From contig NC_045731.1 in NCBI RefSeq assembly GCF_009834535.1, forward strand, positions 14,384,001-14,448,000: 64,000 nucleotides of DNA, given 5' to 3'. Under the pieces are notes generated by a model. The model saw only the letters and a program-made list of their open reading frames with translations, did no database searches and was not told where the DNA came from. Source of the DNA: Camelus ferus (lineage: Eukaryota). Shown piece by piece: positions 2,791-62,082 of the stretch (position 1 is its first letter; the number at the start of each line of letters is the position of its first letter). The translations under genes and the position numbers were made by a program.

Positions 2791-4849
2791 AAAGTCTGTC
2801 TGAACCATGAAGCCACTTTGGAACAGGTTAGGGTTGTCACGAAGCACATTCAAAACCAACATCGTTCAAAGCCTTAACATTTCTGTGTGGGGTCAACAGC
2901 TTAGAAGTAAAGAGAGAAATGTTCACAAATGAGTAAATGCTGAGTTATTTAATGATGGAGAATCAGATGCTCAAAGCTTTAGAAGGTAAAAAAAACGAAC
3001 AGTATCCTAAAATACAGTGGTTTTTAAACTAAAGCTGTAACAGTACGTTTTAGGTTTTTTTTCCAAATGAAATTGTATGTGGAGTCACAATATATAAGGC
3101 AGATGGCTGCAGAGACCAGAGCTGCCCTGGTATCACTGGGGAAGGACACTGAGGCTGTGTCCACCCGGCCTCTTCCGCATCCTTCATCCTCAAGGCACTT
3201 TCCCTTCACATCAGCGACCTGTGCAACTCAGACGGCAAACGGCTGGGCTCGTCCACCTCTCTCCCTTTACCATGGGCTGGAAAGTTAAGCATGCGATGCC
3301 CTGGCCTTCCACCCTGTCTCTGCCAGTTACTAGCCTGATCCCCAACAGAAAAATCACCTAAATCACCAGCTTCCATTTCTTCGCCTATAAAACATAGAGA
3401 AATAAAAATATATATATTTTTTACACTCCAAAGATTTGTTCAGAATCAAAGTAGATTTTTAAATGCCATTTTTTTTACACTCTAACATTGAGATAAATGT
3501 ACAACGTTGTTGGCCACACAGTTAATTCAGAGCAACCTTCAAAGGGAAATAACAGAATGGTAAGCCTGAGTATTAGCATAGAAAGGGAGAGAGGAAGAAA
3601 AACTATCCTGAGGTTGGGCCACAACCTCAGAGGGGTACTTCATTTAGGGAACCTTCACTGAGTACTTGGCCGGCTGGAGGGGCAGTGATGACTAATGCCG
3701 AGGTCCACGGTGTGATGCAGACTCTGGGGACGAAGCACCACCACCGACTGACCGTCGACATCCTCTCTACACATAAACACACACGCAAAAGGAAGCTGTG
3801 TAAACAGGAAAAAGCTCAGACCAAGACAAGGAGCTCAGGCCAGGTGCAAAGGCAGGGCTTTGGCTACGGTCTTCTGGAATACGACATTTAGGTCCTCTCC
3901 GGAAGCGCCGTTCCCTTTCCGGCTGGAAGCACGCACCGTGAGCCCGGGTGGCAGCTGCCCACGTGTGGATGGGAGCATTGCGGGGACCTGCCGGAACCTC
4001 AGCTGGCACACCTACGTTAGCGGCCTACTCACCGCCTCTCCCCACCGCACACCCCTTCTCCCTTCAAGCTCTGCCGAGGTTCTCTTTCCACAATTTGCCA
4101 CAAATGCCTCAGCAGGAAGGGAGCTGCAGTCAAGAGGGTCCCCACTGAGAATGAGCACTGCTCGTTTTCTTGGAGAACTCAAGCTCACCCGTCAGCCTCC
4201 CCTCACCCCCTGCCCATCCCCCCCAACCACCCCCACCCCACGGATTTGTGACCTTGAGCTTTGGGGAAACAGAAAGGCTTGTCTCTTTATCCCTATCTAT
4301 TGCATTGATAATACAGTAATTATCACTCTGAAGGGAATGTTAATTGGGATGAAGTGGCTTGCGGCGGAGGCCAAACAGAACAAGGCAAAAACTATCAGAA
4401 ACTGCAAACAGAAAGAGCTTTTTAAAATGCTGTCCCTAAATATTAAAAGAGTTAGCTCTATTAATTCTAGATTTCTGCAGTGATCGCTGTTTTGTTTGCT
4501 CGTTTGTTCTTCATCATCTCCCACCACCCCCAGCAGATATGAATTCACCTTTGCATCAAAGGCTCTTTGCATTGTCAGAAACAGCAAACACTCATTTAAT
4601 GCCTTCAAACAGCGCTACAGACCAGTGTGCCGTGATACAGCTGTGTCTTGCTAATTATGTGATGCTTGTACATCAATATGACTGCAGAGAAATCATCTTT
4701 TTTGCCATTTCCCACAGTTCTCCAAAATATGTTCTTAAAGGAACTTCGGACACCCAGTTCTCTAAACTTAAAACTGCAGAGTCACTGCTGAGTTCCCTCC
4801 AGTTTTGCTCCCCACATCCACACCAGTGGCCACGAACCAAGGATTCTCC

Positions 4850-5200
4850 ATCCATAAATATTCTAATATCCATCCTTATAATTTCCCCAGCCTTGGCCTT
4901 CTCCAGGCCCATGTCACCTCTCGCCTGGGTTACAGCAGTGCCCTACCTGCCTTGTGTCCCCAGCGCACTCTACTCTAGACACTCTGCTGAGTTGAAATTT
5001 CTTAAGCTCCACTGTGAGCACGTTAGTGCATGAGGGACAAATGTCCTGTGGTCCCTTTGCCCTCAGGAGACTTACATGACAAGCTGCAGATAACAAGATT
5101 GGTTTAACGAAAGTAAGCTACCCGAGAGCAGGGGCTTTGATTATGAACTGTGCTGGTCATGGTGCTAAAAGTATTTGTTGAAAGAATAAGTAAGTGAAAA
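4850..5200 (+). mobile_element. L2 LINE 3' relic
   Basis: Degenerate L2 3' motifs ('catgtcacctctcgcctgggttacagcagtg', 'gagagcagggg...aagtatttgttgaaagaataagt'). Confidence 0.55.
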
Positions 5201-5319
5201 TGGATGAATAGTTGGATGTATAGATAGATGGATGGATGGATGGATGGATGTGAGACAGAAGGAAATGGATGAATAGTTGGATGTATAGATGGATGGATGG
5301 ATGGATGTGAGACAGGAGG
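5198..5319. repeat. Tandem duplication (65 bp + 57 bp units) containing (GGAT)n microsatellite
   Basis: Unit 'aaatggatgaatagttggatgtatagat(agat)(ggat)n gtgagacag(a/g)agg' occurs at 5198-5262 and 5263-5319. Confidence 0.9.
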
Positions 5320-5738
5320 GGAGGGGGCAGGGCACAACCACTGAAGGAGAGTAATTGAGGACAAAACAAACTGGTGAGAACCAAGATGGCAGAAAGTTCA
5401 ACTTCCAGTGGACCTTGAGCCTCATGGCACACCCACAGGTGCCATGACAGGTGCTAGACCGACCATAAAAGGTCAAAAAGTGGGGAGGGGACCAATGCCT
5501 GGAAATCCCTGCCTCTTCCTCAAGTAGTTAGAATAACCCTCCTACTTGTTAGCATATGCAGTTACCGAGCCCATGAAAGCTGACAGCCCTGTACCCTGTG
5601 GGCACCCTCTTGCCTTCTGAGATGGCCCGCCCTCTGTCCATGGAACGGGTATCTCTCTAAATAAACTTGCTTTCACTTTACCGTGCCTAGCTCTTGAATT
5701 CTTTCCTGCACGGGGCAAGAACCTGTTCTCCAGCAGCA
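5308..5738 (+). mobile_element. ERV1-type solo LTR
   Basis: TG...CA ends (tgagacagg...ccagcagca), aataaa followed by an ERV1-like U5 ('ctcttgaattctttcctgc'). Inserted in a degenerate GGAT tract with near-TSD gatg/ggtg. Confidence 0.75.
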
Positions 5739-5966
5739 GGTGGATGGTTGGGTTGGATCTGGATGAATAATATCCCCTTAAATGGCTTGTTCGCAGTATG
5801 AACTAGAGTAGCACACCTGAAAAAGCCAAGCACACGGCAAGCTTCATTCCATGTTCATCCCCTTCCCTTTTTTCTCTGTTGGTCTCCTTGTGCTAGTCCG
5901 TCCTCATCTCCCAACCATGAAAGGTCAGGGCAAGCCATGGAAAGCTCACGTATGCCCCCGGGGAAA

Positions 5967-6151
5967 TCCAGCTACCTTTCAAAACCCCAGGCAAAGCCTT
6001 TGCCACACCACTGCCTTGGAGCCCGGGCTCCCGCAGACAGAGGCTTTTACACAGATTTGCGACTGTGAAAGATCAAATCTTCCCAAAGTTTAAAATTCTG
6101 CAATGTTTCCAAAGAGGCAGCCACTGCACTTTTGGAGGAATTTTAATTGAA
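5967..6151 (+). repeat. Inverted repeat IR1, left arm
   Basis: Manual alignment to the reverse complement of 6892-7077: 14 mismatches + 1 gap in ~185 bp, including a 51-bp perfect run. Confidence 0.97.
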
Positions 6152-6891
6152 ACTGTAGGCAAGGGGGGAATACTCCACTCTGAGTCTTGTTTGGGAGAGA
6201 CGCCCGTGGCTGACCAGTTAGGTATCGACTGTGGTGGGAAGACCCTGGAGCAGAAGAGGCTGCCTGCAGGTGTCAGACGGGCGGGGGTGGGGCTCACAAC
6301 AGGACAGGTGAGGCTACCCTGGGCATGCACCAGGATGACGTAGGGAAGGGATGAGTTTAAGACAGAATTCCCAGGCGGAACTGGTGGGCTGACGGGGAAG
6401 TGACACCATCCCTTAGACTCAGCCTCTCAGATTCTGCCAAAGGCCAAGACTCAGATGTCCTTCGTGTCTTTTGTCCTTTTTTTTTTTTTTTTTTAATAAC
6501 ATTGAAGGTAGAAATAATTTGACTCTTGACAGCTGAAAGCTAGCAAGAACACATCCTGGCTCAGCACGCTCCTGCTGCCGTTAGTCACTAGTGTCCCGGT
6601 GACTGTGTGCCCTATGGAGAAGGCAGAAGTGCCAAGGAGGAGAGCCCCCTACAAGAAGAGTGCTTTAAAAGGCACTTAAAAAAAAAAAGCCCATTTTGTG
6701 GAAGATACCAGCTGTCTCTTAATTGCTATCCGCGCTGTGGTTTCTCCCGGGGGTTGGCAAGGGGAGTGGATTAAAGAAAAGGTTTTGATGGCCATAGGCG
6801 TGAATATCCAAATGATATGAATTTTAATATATACTTTTAAAAGGGTCAGGCAATGATGGAAAGATATGACTGCTTTCCTTTTATTTCTCTG

Positions 6892-7077
6892 TTCAATTAA
6901 AATTTCCTACAAAAGTGCAGTGGCTACCTCTTTGGAAATGTTGCAGAATTTTAAACTTTGGGAAGATCTGATCTTTCACTGTCACAAATCTATGCAAAAG
7001 CCTCTGGCTGCGGGAGCCCGGGCTCCAAGGCAGTGGTGTGGCAAAGGCTTTGCCTGGGTTTCTGGAAGGCAGCTGGA
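6892..7077 (-). repeat. Inverted repeat IR1, right arm
   Basis: Reverse complement of 5967-6151 at ~92% identity. Confidence 0.97.
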
Positions 7078-10000
7078 CTGGAATGAGCCCCTTCCAGTTC
7101 TGAGCGAAGCCACCCAGTTATCTAGATGAAACGAACAGATGCATGAAATATCCCCCTCTCCCCTACCAGAGGAGAAGGCTGAGCTCTCAAAACGCTATTC
7201 ACAGCCCATCATTTAAGACTTTTCAGATAATTAACTAGAGCGTTTCCCTCCCCCCCAAAAAGTGGTTCCAAATACCACTGTGAATCTCATTCCCTGCCCA
7301 ATCCATGCTTCTGAACAGAGCAGGCGACAGGCATGCGTTTAAACAGAGTGTCAAAGAGATGAATCCACAGTTTATCGCTACTATTCATCTTGGCTGGTAA
7401 GTGGCCGCCATACTGTTCTTCATTCATTAAAAATGGCTCATTTCCTTTGGCCTTTATTCATTGCCTGATCTTCCTAATGAACTTAATGTAGCAAGTGATG
7501 TAATCAGACAAAAGAACTGTAAGGACCTTTTTTCTGCCACTATAAGCAGAATTAAATCATATTTAATTAGGAATTTAGTGCTCACTGAAAGTCTCGATTT
7601 AACTGTTCATCACCCGCGCTGCTGTCTACTTGCAGCTTTGCCCCCACCTCTCACTGAGGCGGGGGACCAGGACTAGCTCTTAGGCTCAGCGCTCTAGGTC
7701 GGACACGGCCACCCAGCAGGGAGGTGCCTAACAAGTCCCAGACATGGGGTAATCACCGCATTAGATGTCCCTTAATCCTCCACAGCCAACAGCGCCCGAC
7801 GTGGTCAACATGAAAAGGGACCCAGGCCACGTCAATGGTACCTGCTTTATAACCAGCACAGAGAAGAGTCCAGCAAAGCTGGGAAGAGTTGAGAGGCAAT
7901 GTCTTCTGTATTTTGACCCAAAACAGCTGCCACCCTATGGTGAGGATGAGAGAATTCTATTTCCAGAAAAGGAAACTAAGAACACAAAAAGGTGGGGAGT
8001 GAAAAATCTGTGCCGAAGAAGCTTCGAGGACACCAAGAGGAGCAGACCACAGCTGGAGTGCCCGCCTGCAAGGCGTGCCAGGCCCCGGAGGAGCAGGGAA
8101 GGCCTGCAGGGCTGTTTTCTTTTTTTTTTTTTGGTTTTGCTTCCTTAGCAGAAATAAGCAGGTTGGAGAAGGTGTTTTGAGAAACACGATTTGGTACTCA
8201 ACAGTGCAGCTGGAGAAAGGATGATGGCTTTGGCGCTGTCCAATCAGGAGGCAGTAAGGTCTCGGACCAAGGTGATGGCAGTGAGGTACCAACAGGGGGA
8301 TTTTGCAAGGGGCCCTGTGAGCAAAGAATTGGTGATGCACTGGACAGTCATGGAGACGGAAAGGAGAAAGACGGGTAAAAGCTGTTGGATGCATTTTGGT
8401 CCCATTCTTACTCTGACCCCCATCACGTCTGTCCTTCCTTCCCGTCTACCAGGGTTCAGGTCCTCACCACCTACCCTGCACAATCATCTCAAAGCCACTC
8501 CGGTGAGTGTGACTCTCGCCCCGCCGAGCTCAGGCAGCACATACGGGCAGAGCAGGCCACAGGTCAGCCCTCCGCGGACAGTCTCCGAGCAGGTGTCCTG
8601 TTGCTCTAAGCACCTCGGGGCAGCAAGTTCTCGGCAGCGTTTCTACAATCGCCACGCCCTATGCCTGGTACCCACGGCACTGTAGGTGCCAGGTGAGTAC
8701 TGGTGGAGAGAACAGTGAGGATTTAGAACCATCATGGTCTTCAAGGACTTTCAATAAAGGCTAAAGCCATGGCTAAGTGAGTAAAATCTCTCCTTTAGAT
8801 CAGAGTTCTACAGTGACTCGAAATGATCGCTTTCTGCACAGAGCTGCTTTCTGCTAAAGGCCAAACAAGCTTGAAACAAGACAAACAAAGAACCCTTCTA
8901 TTTGATTCAACATTTCTAAAGAGAGCTGAGAATCTTGATCGACGGTCACCTCCACTTGCCATATCCTGCACCATCATCAGACCTCCAGGCAGGTACAGGA
9001 CTTCTCACGGCTTTCAAATATGCCTTATTTTTTTTTTTTTTTACAAATATGCATTATGTTGAGTCTTCTCATTTAGTCATTAGTGAAGGTAATTCATAGG
9101 GAAGAGGTCAAATATCAACTATCAATTTGCATAAAGGACAAACTCACTAGGATGCTACGTATGCTCTGGGTCCAATAATACAATCTGTCTCATGTCTGAA
9201 GGGCACGTTTAGAGAAATTACTTTACACGGAGCTCACATACCAATGAGCCAGGGGGAGCTCAGTATACAGTAAATTCTTTCGACTTTAGCAAATAATATT
9301 GTGAGGCTTATTAAGGGACAATGGGAACTTGACAATTGGGGCATAAGAGTCTCACGTATTTAGTTGACATCTCAATATTCTCCATGTATCTTAGAAGCCA
9401 AGAGACCTTAAGATTTCAAAAACACTGCTCAGTGCCCACTCCAGAATAAGCCTGAAAAAGAGGAATCTTGAACTGGTAGCAAAGGGGTTGAGCATGAGAA
9501 ATTAATAGTAAAAACTGGCAGCTTCCTGGACAGTCTTCACCACAGAGCTTTACCTCTAGGTGATGTGAATTCATCTAATCGAATCGTGGCTGCTCCTGTA
9601 TTTGAATACAGGACACATTCCAAAGCAAGACAGTTTTGTAAAATATTCTGAATCACACTGGATTACCCGTGTGTTGGGTTTCACTCCTCTGGGCAGACCA
9701 CCTGGATGTGACCATCACAGAGGGAAGCGATTCTAGAATATGGATGTTAGATGACTGCACAGGGCTAGTGTCCTTCCTCACAGACGCCAAAGCCTAGGAG
9801 GGGATGCAGAAAGAATCGAGCCCCAAGGAGCTGGTTAATGCGCACGCCTTCCAGAGCGATTCATCCACCAGCCCTGCCGCTGTGACCATTATGGATTTAT
9901 TAACATTAAAGCAATACGATTCAAACAGGTATCAGAATATTTTAATGTGACGGAACGCTGGTTGAAATATTGTTGCAGCCTCTCAGCTGACTGAAGCAAG

Positions 10001-10439
10001 CTGAGATAATTGTGCTGCCGAGACGAACAGACTCTGCCTCCAGATGCCACTCGGGGCCCTGAGCTTTGTCCTCTAAACCTGCATTATTTGATGTAATAAT
10101 GGCCTCAAGTTATGCTGAGAATCAGCCCCCCCCCATATTGTGGTGCCCAATGGACACGGCTGACCACATCCCCTCTGCTCCAGTACATCTTCTGAGGCTT
10201 CTCTGCAGAATCAGTGAGGAAGCCCAGGCTGAGGAGCTGCTGTCATGTCCTGGGGGCTTCCTGGTACAGCTCTGGTTCACTGAGGACGGGGTCGGGGTGG
10301 GGCTGGGGGGTGGAGAGCAATGGAGTGGAGACCAGGGCCCTGTGTCTCCAGAGTCAAGAGCTGGAACAAGAAAATCATCTGAGAAAAGCAATTAAGCACA
10401 AGAGCAACAAGCACAGACTGCAAATAAGAGCGAATCCAG

Positions 10440-10804
10440 ACTGTATGATGTCACTTACAGTGGAATCTTAAAAAAAAAAAAAAAGACACAAATGAACTTA
10501 TGTACAAAACAGAGAGAGACTCACAGACATAGAGAACACACTGATGCGTACCGGGGGGAAAGCGGGAGGGAAGGGGTACACAGGGAGTTTGAGATTTGCA
10601 GACACTAACTACTAAATATAAAACAGATAAACAACAACCTTCTACTGTAGAGCACGGGGAACCATATTCACTATCTTGTAGTGACCTACAACTTAAAAGA
10701 ATATGAAAAGGAACACATGCATGTGTACGTATGACTGGAGCACCGTGCTGCACACCAGAAACTGACACAACATTGTAAACGGACTCTACTTCAGTAAAAA
10801 AAAA
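10440..10804 (+). mobile_element. L1 3' end fragment (cetartiodactyl type)
   Basis: 'tggaatctt(a)n gacacaaatgaacttatgtacaaaacagagagagactcacagacatagagaac...ctacttcagt(a)n'. Confidence 0.9.
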
Positions 10805-17172: not shown

Positions 17173-17382
17173 GGCTCACCACTATATATAAACATAGATT
17201 AAAAAAAACAAATTTCTTCTGTGTAGCACAGGAAACTATATTCAGTATCTTGTAATAACCTTTAATGGAAAAGAATATGAAAATGAATATACGTATATAT
17301 GTGTGTATAGATGCATGACAGGGACCTTACGCTGTACATGAGAAACTGACACATTGTAACCGACTGTACTTCAATTAGGAAA
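17173..17382 (+). mobile_element. L1 3' end fragment
   Basis: L1 3'UTR motifs. Imperfect TSD aaa(g/c)tca(g/a)ctgctataaa at ~17154-17172 and ~17383-17401. Confidence 0.88.
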
Positions 17383-18405: not shown

Positions 18406-18882
18406 TGTAACCAAGCAGGGCCCCAGGGGGCCTTCCCAGGAAAGACCCCTCCCCCGTGTCCTCTGCGGCAGCTCCTCTCTGAAGCACCCAGATAGCTCAT
18501 GCATCTGTCCTGAGTTTTTCAGATGCTAAAAACCACCACCAAAGGGAAGACATTAACTACTTGATGATGGAGAGCACATGGCCCCCAGACCTTCTGGCGC
18601 CTGGCGGGGTTGAGGGTCTTGACCACCGTGTTCCCTCAACATCAACCAGTCAGAGATTGTGCACGAGCTGATCACATGCTCTGCGACCCACCTCCCCTCC
18701 CTCACCTGGCCTTTAAATACGCTTTGCTGAAACCCTTCGGGGAGTCTGGGGTTTTCTTGGGCACAAGCCACCCCGTCCTCCTTGCTCGGCCCTGCAATAA
18801 ACCTTTCTCTGCTCTGAACTCCGATGTTACAGCCTGTTTGGCCTTGCGGTGCATCGGGCACACGGACTTGCCTTTAGCACCA
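18406..18882 (+). mobile_element. ERV1-type solo LTR (same family as 61614-62082)
   Basis: tgtaacc...agcacca with 5-bp TSD ccttc (18401-18405, 18883-18887). TATA-like tttaaata and aataaa present; collinear with 61614-62082. Confidence 0.9.
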
Positions 18883-19310
18883 CCTTCTATCACATCCAGC
18901 TGCTTCAGCAAGATGCCAGGAAATCAAGACAGAGAGGAAGACGGAGACAAACGGGGATCTGAATAGAAACAGAACGTCTGATTGTCATGGTGGACTCTGA
19001 AGGTTTCCGAGCACTTCACCCCAGGATGCGGTGCGCACCCTGAGAACAGAGTTGGGGGGGTCTCAGAGCTCACGCCCTGACAAGCAGAGGCTGGTGCTAG
19101 TCTTGATTTTTGGGGGGGAAATCACGGACTTGAGTTTTGGAAGAGTGACAGCCTACAGGGGAGAAAGAAGTGGGTTCCCGGAGACACGAAACACCACATA
19201 ACTCTGGGCCTGGAGCCAACATTCAGGGCAGCACCCACGGCCCGACCCCACCCCTCACAGCTTGCACCTGGAGGCAACAGGACTGAATCCTGTGTTTAGT
19301 ACCAGAAACG

Positions 19311-19597
19311 GAAGCAGCAGGCAGCGGGCGCAGCACCAGGGAGGCCTGAGCAAGGCCTTGTCTGGTCTCTAGAGAGCGAACAGCCTGCCTCCAACCTCCT
19401 GAGCATCTCCCGGAAGACCTCAAACCGAGAGAGTGGGGAACAACTTCCAGGCCACAGGCCAGGCCAGGTGCACACACACGTGTGAGTCCCAGGTGCCCGC
19501 CAGAAACCGAACAGCTGCCCGTCTTCTCTCTTGGGGGCCCCTTGCTCACGGCTCCAGAGGGAGTGGGAGTGGCCCTTGGCTTTCCGGTTCTGCCTGC
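19311..19597 (+). repeat. Inverted repeat IR2, left arm
   Basis: Manual alignment to the reverse complement of 20517-20802: 47 mismatches + 1 gap in 287 bp, with a 33-bp perfect core. Confidence 0.96.
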
Positions 19598-20516: not shown

Positions 20517-20802
20517 GCAGGCTCAACCAGAAAGCCAAGGTCCACTCCTGCGCTCTCTGGAGGTGCGGGCAAAGGGCCCCCAGGAGAGACGGAGGGCAGC
20601 TGTTCGGTTTCTGACAGACACCTGGAACTCACACGTGTGTGTGCACCTGGCCTGGCCTGCAACCTGGAACTTGCTCCCGCCCTCTTGGTTCCGGGTCTTC
20701 CAGGAGATGCTCAAGAAGCTGGAGGCTGGCTGTCAGCTCTCTAGAGGCCAGGGAAGTCTATGCTCGGGCCTCCCTGGTGCTGAGCCCGCTGCCTGCTGCT
20801 TC
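20517..20802 (-). repeat. Inverted repeat IR2, right arm
   Basis: Reverse complement of 19311-19597 at ~83% identity. Confidence 0.96.
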
Positions 20803-20959
20803 TGTTTAATACTTTCTGTCTCCCCTGAAGTTAACATACAGAGTAGACAGCTTGCTTCACGAGTAGCGTTAATACATGGATGAATGTGACGCCTGGACAA
20901 CGTACTTGCTTTACCCCAACACGTCCTTTGTTCTACTTACGTGCAGGAGGGCGCTTCAC

Positions 20960-29274: not shown

Positions 29275-29570
29275 TGTTTTCACTGCAGGGGATTTATCTG
29301 TGTGGTTACCAAAGGGGAAAGGGCGTGGGAGGGATAAATCAGGGGTCTCGGATTAACAGATACACATTATTATATAAAAAGTAGGTAAATAACATGGACC
29401 TACTGTATAGCACAACAACTATATTCAATTTCTTGTGGTAGACTATAATGGAAAAGAATCTGAAAACATGTATGTATGTGTATAACTGAATCCCTCTGGT
29501 GTACACCTGAAACTAACATTGTAAATCAACTACACGTCGTTAAAAAATAAAAATTAAAAAATAAAAATAA
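29275..29570 (+). mobile_element. L1 3' end fragment
   Basis: 'ggttaccaaaggggaaagg...gggataaatcagggg...cctactgtatagcaca...tgtaaatcaactacac' plus an A-rich tail. Confidence 0.88.
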
Positions 29571-30139: not shown

Positions 30140-30682
30140 AATGCTAAAAACAGACACATCTAATGGAAGCAACCTGTGTCCACTGACAGATGAATGGATA
30201 AAGAAGCAGTGGCATATATATATACAGTGGAATACTACTCAGCCATAAAAAAGAATGGAATAATGCCATTGCAGCAACACAGATGGATCTGGAGGTTGTC
30301 ATACGAAGTGAAGTAAGCCAGAAAGAGAGAGGAAAATACCATATGATATCAATTATATGTGGAATCAAAAAAACTGACACAAATGAACTTATTTATAAAA
30401 CACAGACAGACTCACAGACACAGAAAACAAACTTATGGTTACAAAGAGGAAAGGGGAGGGTTGAGGGATAAATTGGGAATTCGGGATTTGCAGAAACTAA
30501 CCAGTATATATAAAACAGATAAAACAAGAAAATCCTACTGTAGAGCACAGGGAACTGTATTTAGTATCTTGTAATAGCCCATAATGAAAAAGAATATATA
30601 TACATGTAGAGCTGAGTCACTATGCTGTACCCCAGAAACTAACACGACATTGCAAACCTACTATATTGCAATTAAAAAAACA
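30140..30682 (+). mobile_element. L1 3' end (ORF2 tail/3'UTR)
   Basis: 'cagatgaatggataaagaag...ggaatactactcagccataaaaaagaatgg...gaagtaagccag...' is a canonical L1 3' region. Confidence 0.93.
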
Positions 30683-42563: not shown

Positions 42564-43150
42564 TGTAACCGAGCAGGACCCTGTGGGGCCTCCCCGGGCC
42601 AGACCCTCCCCCAAATCCCCCGCTGTAGCTCCTCTCTGAAGCTCCCAGATAAAAGTAACCAAAAATGGCTTCCCTCATGCTAAAGCAAATTCTAGCCTGA
42701 CTCTATATGGCACGTGTTTCTCTCTTCCTCAGAGCACTCACCCTCCCGCTTAAGCGCCCTTTGTTCCAGGCACAGAAATGTCCAGAGACGGGACTGTTAA
42801 CCTCCTGTGCAGAAGCCAAACACCAGACCGAGGCCCACCGGAGGGGGAGGACACGGTCTGACAACCACAGAAACGGAGGCCCCACCGACAGCCGATGCAG
42901 CTGCGTCAGGGAGGAAAGAACGCAGCCCCTGCACGTTCTCAGATGTTTATCAGAAGCTCTACCCCTTGGACTCGCATCATAAAACTCCCTGCTGCCCCTC
43001 CCCAAATCCGGCTCGCAGTCCTGAGGCATCAGCCCCAAGTGTCCCCCTCTGCCTAGGCAAGAAATAAAGCTGTTCTTTTCTGTTTCACCCAAAATCCTGT
43101 CTCCAGGTTCCAATTCAGTGTCAGGGCACAGAGGCCGGGATTCGGCAACT
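42564..43150 (+). mobile_element. ERV1-type solo LTR
   Basis: tgtaaccgagcagg...ttcggcaact with 4-bp TSD aact (42560-42563, 43151-43154). TATA-like cataaaa and aataaa present; first ~50 bp shared with the 18406 and 61614 LTRs. Confidence 0.87.
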
Positions 43151-46225: not shown

Positions 46226-46338
46226 GGGAGAGGGTACAGCTCAGCGGTAGAGCACATGCTCAGCAGGCACGAGGTCCTGGGTTCAATCCCCAGTGTCTCC
46301 ATCAAAATAAATAAATAAACCTAATTACCCACCCCTCT
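46226..46338 (+). mobile_element. tRNA-derived SINE, camelid Vic-1-like
   Basis: A box 'tacagctcagcggtagagc', B box 'gggttcaatccc', tail 'aaaataaataaataaacctaattacc...' plus poly(A). Confidence 0.92.
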
Positions 46339-61613: not shown

Positions 61614-62082
61614 TGTAACCGAGCAGGACCCTGGGGGCCTTCCAGGCTCAGACCCCTCCCCCATGTCCTCTGCGGCAGCTCCTCTCTGAAGCACCCCCAT
61701 AACAGTATCTCATGCTTATTTCCTGAGTTTTTCAGATGCCAAAAACCACCACCAAAGGGAAGGAATGAACTACTTGATGATGGAGAGCATGTGGCCCCCA
61801 GACCTTCTGGCGCGTGGGGGTTGATGGTGTTGAACCCCACCCTGTTCTCTCCACATCAGCCAGAGACTGTGCACGAGCTGATCACATGCTCTGCGACCCC
61901 CCTCCCTCACCTGCCTTTAAATACGCTTTGCTGAAACCCTTCAGGGAGTTCGGGGTTTTCTTGGACGTGAGCCACCCCGTCCTCCTAGCTCTGCCTGGAA
62001 ATAAACCTTTTTCTGCTCCAAACTCCAACGTTTCAGTTTGGCCTCGCGGTGTGTCGGGCGCATGAACTGGCCTCGGGTAACA
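61614..62082 (+). mobile_element. ERV1-type solo LTR (same family as 18406-18882)
   Basis: tgtaaccgagc...ctcgggtaaca with near-TSD cagc/cagt; collinear with 18406-18882. Confidence 0.9.

Follow-up and report, generated by a model that had tools for sequence, protein, structure and literature searches.

A long inverted repeat of unique sequence probably formed by a local, lineage-specific inverted duplication

The inverted repeat IR1, in the first part of the window (the whole 64-kb stretch of DNA analyzed here), is very probably a lineage-specific local inverted duplication, likely made in one step as a templated insertion and drifting neutrally ever since. A segment of ~189 bp of ordinary non-coding DNA, now at positions 6890–7079, would have been copied as its reverse complement ~740 bp upstream. 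Judged from comparison with orthologous sequences, the left arm appears to be neither a transposon, nor a copy of a dispersed repeat, nor a conserved RNA stem, and IR1 is most likely an ordinary, neutral copying accident. A first-pass annotation had offered three readings of the repeat, namely a recent fold-back duplication, a selected RNA duplex or a pair of arms homogenized by gene conversion. The fold-back duplication is retained here, the selected duplex is not, and homogenization by conversion proved unneeded.

RESULTS

Geometry and identity of the arms

Global alignment of the arms (5967–6151 and 6892–7077) showed that they are reverse complements with 14 mismatches and one gap, separated by a spacer of ~740 bp, and that the longest perfect run between them is 51 bp. 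The first-pass description of a ~185-bp inverted repeat with 14 mismatches, one gap and a 51-bp run is thus reproduced. A repeat search placed the arms at 5967–6153 and 6891–7077 (187 nt, 90% complementary, 737 nt apart), and blastn of arm against arm gave 91.9% identity over 186 columns (E = 2e-72). No third copy of the arm was found in the 64-kb window by blastn. The alignment with outgroup sequences described below shifts the true ends of the copies 2–3 nt outward, to 5965–6153 for the left arm and 6890–7079 for the right arm.

Some details that had been put forward as suggestive carry no statistical weight. A perfect run of at least 51 among 15 differences in 186 columns has a chance probability of 0.10, so the 51-bp run is not significant. 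The 7-versus-3 split of G-U wobbles between the strands, which arises because the 10 transitions fall on either strand, is not significant either (two-sided binomial P ∼0.34); when the strands are folded, IR1 contains three G-U pairs on the plus strand and eight on the minus strand. The view that the arms are not a SINE, LINE or LTR pair was borne out. They appear to be unique sequence, no dispersed copies having been found in the 64-kb window or in the protein collections searched.

Outgroup orthologues

Orthologues were retrieved with the 87-aa open reading frame over the right arm (6866–7126) as a protein query, after which the encoding contigs were fetched. The reading frame matched two predicted ‘proteins’ on contigs of other animals, and cluster members together with an HMM search covering 1.8 billion representatives gave more. 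In the word-index and HMM protein searches with the arm reading frame, six clusters were recovered, and the five with DNA all map to one orthologous locus; the sixth, P0020, is the only more distant match; it has no relatives, and its contig is too short to reach the left-arm site. One ruminant protein sits on 33 contigs, and the sampling of ruminant host DNA is deep. From these searches, the arm segment does not appear to be a dispersed family in the well-sampled outgroup lineages.

The contigs fall into three mammalian lineages. Lineage alpha (L001, L015 and L016) is 79–80% identical to the window. Lineage beta is about 75% identical and comprises two sub-lineages, L012–L014 differing by 8–9% from L002 and L008–L011; its contigs carry a SINE that we take to be of the ruminant Bov-tA type. 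Lineage gamma (L017–L025) is 75.3–78.7% identical to the window across its contigs. A quartet analysis over ∼2 kb was near-star, the three alternative groupings being supported by 27, 24 and 17 informative sites, and is compatible with alpha, beta and gamma forming one clade. The window has the longest terminal branch in this quartet (188 singleton sites versus 139, 131 and 67), and a basal artiodactyl position of its lineage would fit the quartet distances.

One of the contigs, L016, a Logan contig of lineage alpha, diverges from L001 within the arm. Its segment 781–1142 was considered as an arm variant, a splice or a rearrangement and was rejected, since the junction GATCGATC lies inside the arm and is followed by unrelated sequence, as in a Hi-C ligation chimera. 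Contigs fetched via protein matches can mislead.

Assembly support

The contigs of 14 DNA-type sequencing runs, from four studies and under two organism labels, contain 0.95–0.99 of the 31-mers sampled from positions 5800–7300. With 8% divergence between the arms, most words within them are specific to one arm. IR1 is not an artefact of one assembly. Chimeric reads are known to produce inverted repeats, and L016, fetched from another species, is indeed such a chimera, so that a fold-back chimera could be invoked for IR1 as well. However, the independent short-read contig sets contain the region with its junctions included, and the arms have come to differ at 14 sites, which fits a duplication of some age but not a chimera. 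We regard an assembly artefact as hardly conceivable.

The left arm is absent from the orthologous site in three lineages

The right arm and the spacer are present, collinear and at the orthologous position in every outgroup contig of alpha, beta and gamma, indicating that the 1.1-kb unit was not inserted whole. For the right arm (6890–7079, plus strand), the putative ancestral source segment, orthologous position and collinear flanks are seen in all three lineages (L001/L015, L002/L008–L014 and L017–L025). The left arm (5965–6153, minus strand), putatively copied from the right arm as its reverse complement, is missing in all outgroup contigs that extend to its site, namely L001 and L015 (alpha), L008, L010 and L012 (beta) and L017 (gamma), and the same break at the left-arm site appears for L009 and L011 in the local alignment table. 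That all outgroup contigs reaching the site, from three lineages, lack the left arm and are otherwise collinear supports the recent fold-back duplication that had been proposed.

The boundaries of the gain can be followed in the individual alignments. Outgroup sequences run through the left flank of the repeat (5740–5959, plus strand), which is orthologous up to the breakpoint in the alignments of L001, L015 and L017, as far as window positions 5956–5959; they resume at 6149–6160, with 17–28 nt between these points instead of ∼190 nt. In the left flank, residues 36–175 of L001, 29–236 of L015 and 38–236 of L017 align to the window from 5751, 5760 and 5820, respectively, through 5956–5959. On the other side, the spacer alignments start at 6149 for alpha (∼79% identity), at 6160 for beta (∼75%) and at 6157 for gamma (∼76%), all in plus orientation. 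The spacer (6154–6889, plus strand) is accordingly ancestral, collinear with the outgroups and unflipped; it contains a T18 run (6478–6495) and an A11 run (6680–6690).

At the empty site, alpha and gamma have ∼20 nt in common, roughly CT(T/G)TTGAATTTGTACC and then a few more bases, for which the window has no counterpart. In place of this ancestral stretch of ∼20 nt, the window has GGGGA followed by the 189-nt reverse complement of 6890–7079. The five filler nucleotides at the outer junction (5960–5964) find no match in the outgroup empty site or in the sequence that continues the right arm, and together with the preceding C-run they form a small CCCC/GGGG palindrome.

The beta contigs L008, L010 and L012 have a 24-nt deletion of their own exactly at the site of the window's left-arm gain. 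With this deletion and the window's insertion at one spot, the spot was hit by indels twice independently. Farther upstream, positions 4310–4873 are the block best conserved against the ruminant contigs (about 84%), compared with 67–77% on either side.

Direction and age of the copy

Changes in the arms were polarized over 189 aligned sites with four outgroup sequences, two from alpha and two from beta; gamma lies outside that alignment. At nine sites, both arms share a state that is absent from the four alpha and beta sequences. Private changes number six in the left arm and six in the right arm, with six more being ambiguous (another alignment gave seven and six). The K2P distance from arm to arm is 0.097; the distances of each arm to the four sequences from alpha and beta are 0.19–0.22. 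The absence of the left arm in the outgroups, the nine shared states and the low distance between the arms together lead us to read the left arm as an inverted copy made on the window's branch.

Neither arm stands out in its rate of change. Among sites at which all four outgroup sequences have the same base, derived states on the window's branch make up 9.7% in the right arm, 12.1% in the spacer and 13.9% in the right flank. The 15 changes observed in the right arm, against about 20 expected, are not significantly low by a rough binomial estimate, and both arms appear to drift at about the local background rate with no marked constraint. The figures are self-consistent, suggesting ∼6% change on the window's branch before the copy and about 3–5% per arm afterwards, which would place the event roughly a quarter to half of the way back along that branch. 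The basal artiodactyl split dates to about 60–65 Myr. If the window is camelid, and with this date, the copy would have been made on the order of 15–30 Myr ago.

In both arms (7011–7056 and 5988–6033), a perfect 14-nt palindrome, GGAGCCCGGGCTCC, is accompanied by a 7+1+7 palindrome, GGCAAAGGCTTTGCC. Both palindromes are imperfect in the alpha and beta orthologues, and several of the nine shared-derived sites are those that perfect them. Earlier short template switches might have produced the palindromes, or the DNA might have been prone to form hairpins and so have favored the later event.

Alternative origins

If alpha, beta and gamma form one clade that excludes the window, the absence of the left arm from all three counts as one event that could have either polarity, and the direction of change then rests on the low divergence between the arms and on there being no need for gene conversion. 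An ancient inverted repeat, lost in a single event in the ancestry common to the other three lineages and kept similar here by arm-to-arm conversion, would draw on this topology, since with the near-star quartet the absence could be one deletion; moreover, the 51-bp perfect run sits in a part of the arm that is variable among the outgroups. Yet such a history needs two processes where one suffices, as well as a deletion that left ∼20 unrelated nucleotides common to alpha and gamma, and distant relatives would be expected to have both arms, whereas alpha, beta and gamma all lack the left one. The run itself (P = 0.10) does not call for conversion, and the differences are otherwise evenly spread. 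Private changes are symmetric between the arms, inverted similarity stops sharply at the arm ends, and shared-derived and private changes sum to about the background rate of the branch. No positive sign of gene conversion was found in the arm ends, the spread of differences or the perfect run. We consider an ancient repeat to be quite unlikely; the proposal that the arms were homogenized survives only within this less parsimonious account, as the pattern of differences does not demand it.

Long terminal inverted arms around a core of ∼740 bp resemble some MULE- or foldback-type elements, raising the question of whether IR1 is a non-autonomous DNA transposon whose terminal inverted repeats measure ∼189 bp or, alternatively, two inverted copies of a dispersed repeat. 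However, in the outgroups the orthologous site contains the core together with one arm, which means that the unit did not arrive as one piece, and there is no target-site duplication, the outer flanking bases at 5965 and 7079 not being repeats of one another. Neither kind of element agrees with the lack of a further copy in the 64-kb window. A dispersed repeat is also opposed by the finding of only orthologous-locus clusters in two very large protein collections, and by the nine lineage-specific states that the left arm shares with the neighboring right arm. An origin of either kind is extremely improbable.

Predicted RNA duplex and transcription

Whatever its origin, IR1 might now be a selected RNA element, serving as an ADAR or Dicer hairpin, as a source of endo-siRNAs or as a loop in splicing or back-splicing. 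The predicted duplex is very stable: the fold of 5965–7079 has 174–178 arm-arm pairs on either strand, and the arms alone fold with −311 kcal/mol (plus strand) and −333 kcal/mol (minus strand). According to these predictions, a transcript crossing both arms could fold into a duplex of ∼175 bp. The contigs of RNA runs, from two studies of reproductive-tract samples, also contain much of the region, with 0.39–0.75 of 5800–7300 and 0.69–0.84 of 4460–10460. These runs carry 0.6–1.0 billion contig letters (the DNA runs about 2 billion); since their contigs amount to a large share of a genome, the presence of a given stretch in them is weak evidence of expression, and any transcription is broad and not specific to the repeat.

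All four RNA runs for which both figures are available contain the IR1 region less completely than its surroundings, and the DNA runs show no such dip. In X15, 0.75 of 5800–7300 was present, against ∼0.83 of the rest of 4460–10460 (0.81 of the whole); the corresponding values were 0.69 and ∼0.85 (0.81) in X16, 0.61 and ∼0.87 (0.81) in X17, and 0.39 and ∼0.79 (0.69) in X18. A dip over IR1 is what A-to-I editing could cause and in this respect would suit a selected RNA. Other possible causes are structure-dependent library loss, the low-complexity runs in the spacer and assembly noise.

The evolutionary evidence points the other way. The repeat is lineage-specific, with one arm missing in the outgroups, and in both arms unpaired changes have built up about as fast as under neutrality, conservation showing no excess; all 12 polarized private changes in the arms break pairs or make wobbles. 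Lineage-specific origin, symmetric decay of pairing and a background rate of change thus argue against a selected duplex, and at the level of sequence nothing indicates that the predicted duplex was selected. The selected long-range RNA duplex of the first-pass annotation is therefore not upheld, related species having only one arm and drift being symmetric at about the background rate, and we judge any present selected role in RNA to be very unlikely.

A search of IR1 against Rfam gave only a 14-bit match to KCNQ1OT1_1 (E = 0.04, gathering score 70). An identity of IR1 with KCNQ1OT1_1 was rejected, as the match is at chance level and nothing in the rest of the window supports it. A coding reading was likewise set aside: the open reading frames over the arms and the long ones at 7.7–8.7 kb belong to no Pfam family, and their frame is not kept between species. 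The ruminant ‘genes’ that correspond to the frames at 7.7–8.7 kb look like translated SINEs. In a metagenome pattern scan with a 19-nt core conserved in all arm orthologues, five hits were obtained, which were taken as chance matches because none aligned to the window, and scans of this DNA for bacterial-type promoters and terminators and with ARAGORN gave nothing relevant.

DISCUSSION

The outgroup comparison establishes that a copying event took place at IR1. As for the enzymology, we infer that a DNA end or a nascent strand at a stalled fork or break would have switched to the nearby opposite strand, copied ∼190 nt and then returned, by template switching, MMBIR-type synthesis or break-repair synthesis. 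The copy would have replaced ∼20 nt of the original sequence and left the 5-nt filler, after which both arms would have drifted neutrally, with ∼6 private changes each. It may be speculated that the CCCC/GGGG palindrome at the filler would fit a brief snap-back. Microhomology, which some template-switch models predict, amounts to at most 2–3 nt at the inner junction, with the filler at the outer one; this would speak somewhat against such a switch, but later substitutions blur both junctions. Homeology at the junctions was also considered, CTTTTG and ATTT occurring both at the ancestral site and at the arm's inner end, and was rejected because it is no better than 48% of random windows.

Template-switch mutations are known to create reverse-complement repeats and hairpins (Loytynoja and Goldman 2017, PMC5453318; Walker et al. 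2021, PMC7954356), and the same class of mutation has been described further by Monttinen and Loytynoja (PMC8794818) and Monttinen et al. 2023 (PMC10710096). As in those cases, one event at IR1 would have written a nearby reverse complement into a site without a prior repeat, giving an initially perfect stem with later point changes, and the history is read from outgroups that lack one arm. The cases in the cited papers are short, of hairpin or miRNA size, whereas IR1 is far longer, with ∼189 nt copied from ∼740 nt away. Unlike them, IR1 also has ∼20 nt replaced, a 5-nt filler and no clear junction homology. Replication-based inverted rearrangements of the FoSTeS/MMBIR and ODIRA kinds are known at larger scale (PMC10766183, PMC4689423). 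They resemble IR1 in that a switch between leading and lagging or between nascent strands yields inverted copies, but the models concern inverted triplications and amplifications of kilobases to megabases, often primed at pre-existing short inverted repeats, whereas IR1 has a single small extra copy and an unchanged copy number of the spacer.

With an empty site and shared derived states both found, IR1 appears to work like a large template-switch mutation, and it does not show the features of a transposon, a dispersed-repeat pair or a conserved structured RNA. IR1 is real but ordinary, a mutation of a known kind. By itself it matters little. Its interest lies in being a clean, datable case in which one copying accident would have turned unique sequence into a perfect stem of ∼180 bp and in which three other lineages still show the empty site. 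It also cautions against assuming selection whenever a long, non-repeat inverted repeat of high identity is met in transcribed DNA.

Inverted SINE pairs, such as inverted Alu elements, form long dsRNA and are ADAR substrates. As with these pairs, a long intramolecular duplex is predicted if both arms of IR1 lie in one transcript; unlike them, IR1 has arms of unique sequence and not of a dispersed repeat. If its arms were edited or diced in RNA, IR1 would be a natural young long-dsRNA locus of known age.

It is unlikely, though of broader interest, that mutations of one restricted size class, with ∼130–240 nt copied 0.25–1.2 kb away, recur in this genome and that IR1 is one of them; IR1 would be one data point for such a possible class of short-range inverted duplications. 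Were the class real, a copy length near the size of a nucleosome or an Okazaki fragment would suggest one particular replication error, for example the copying of a nascent strand or a lagging-strand fragment across the fork. Long hairpin-forming sequences would then arise continuously in transcribed DNA, and some could become ADAR or Dicer substrates.

Other features of the window

A second, unrelated inverted repeat, IR2, lies at 19306–19597 and 20517–20807, with 292-nt arms that are 83% identical with one gap and a spacer of 919 bp (GC 0.55, CpG o/e 0.58). Its arms have diverged roughly twice as far as those of IR1 (K about 0.19), and its age may equal that of the entire branch leading to the window. 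In a contig of a different run (L026; 99.1% identity over 1811 bp), the left arm of IR2 and its spacer are present together with the initial 87 nt of the right arm; a protein search gave no distant orthologue of IR2, only this close relative at 99.1% identity.

Beside the left arm of IR2 lies one of three direct copies (18407–18832, 42564–42657 and 61614–62036) that are 78–90% alike and 24–43 kb apart; they are probably members of a dispersed element. At 46230–46301, Rfam gives a tRNA score of 37 bits (gathering score 29) and ARAGORN finds no tRNA, so that this segment is probably the head of a tRNA-derived SINE or a tRNA pseudogene. Copies of a tRNA-SINE-like family, 61–82% alike and in both orientations, occur at 2574–2760, 10476–10802, 17203–17296, 29330–29553 and 30367–30680. 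The arms of IR1 behave differently from these dispersed copies.
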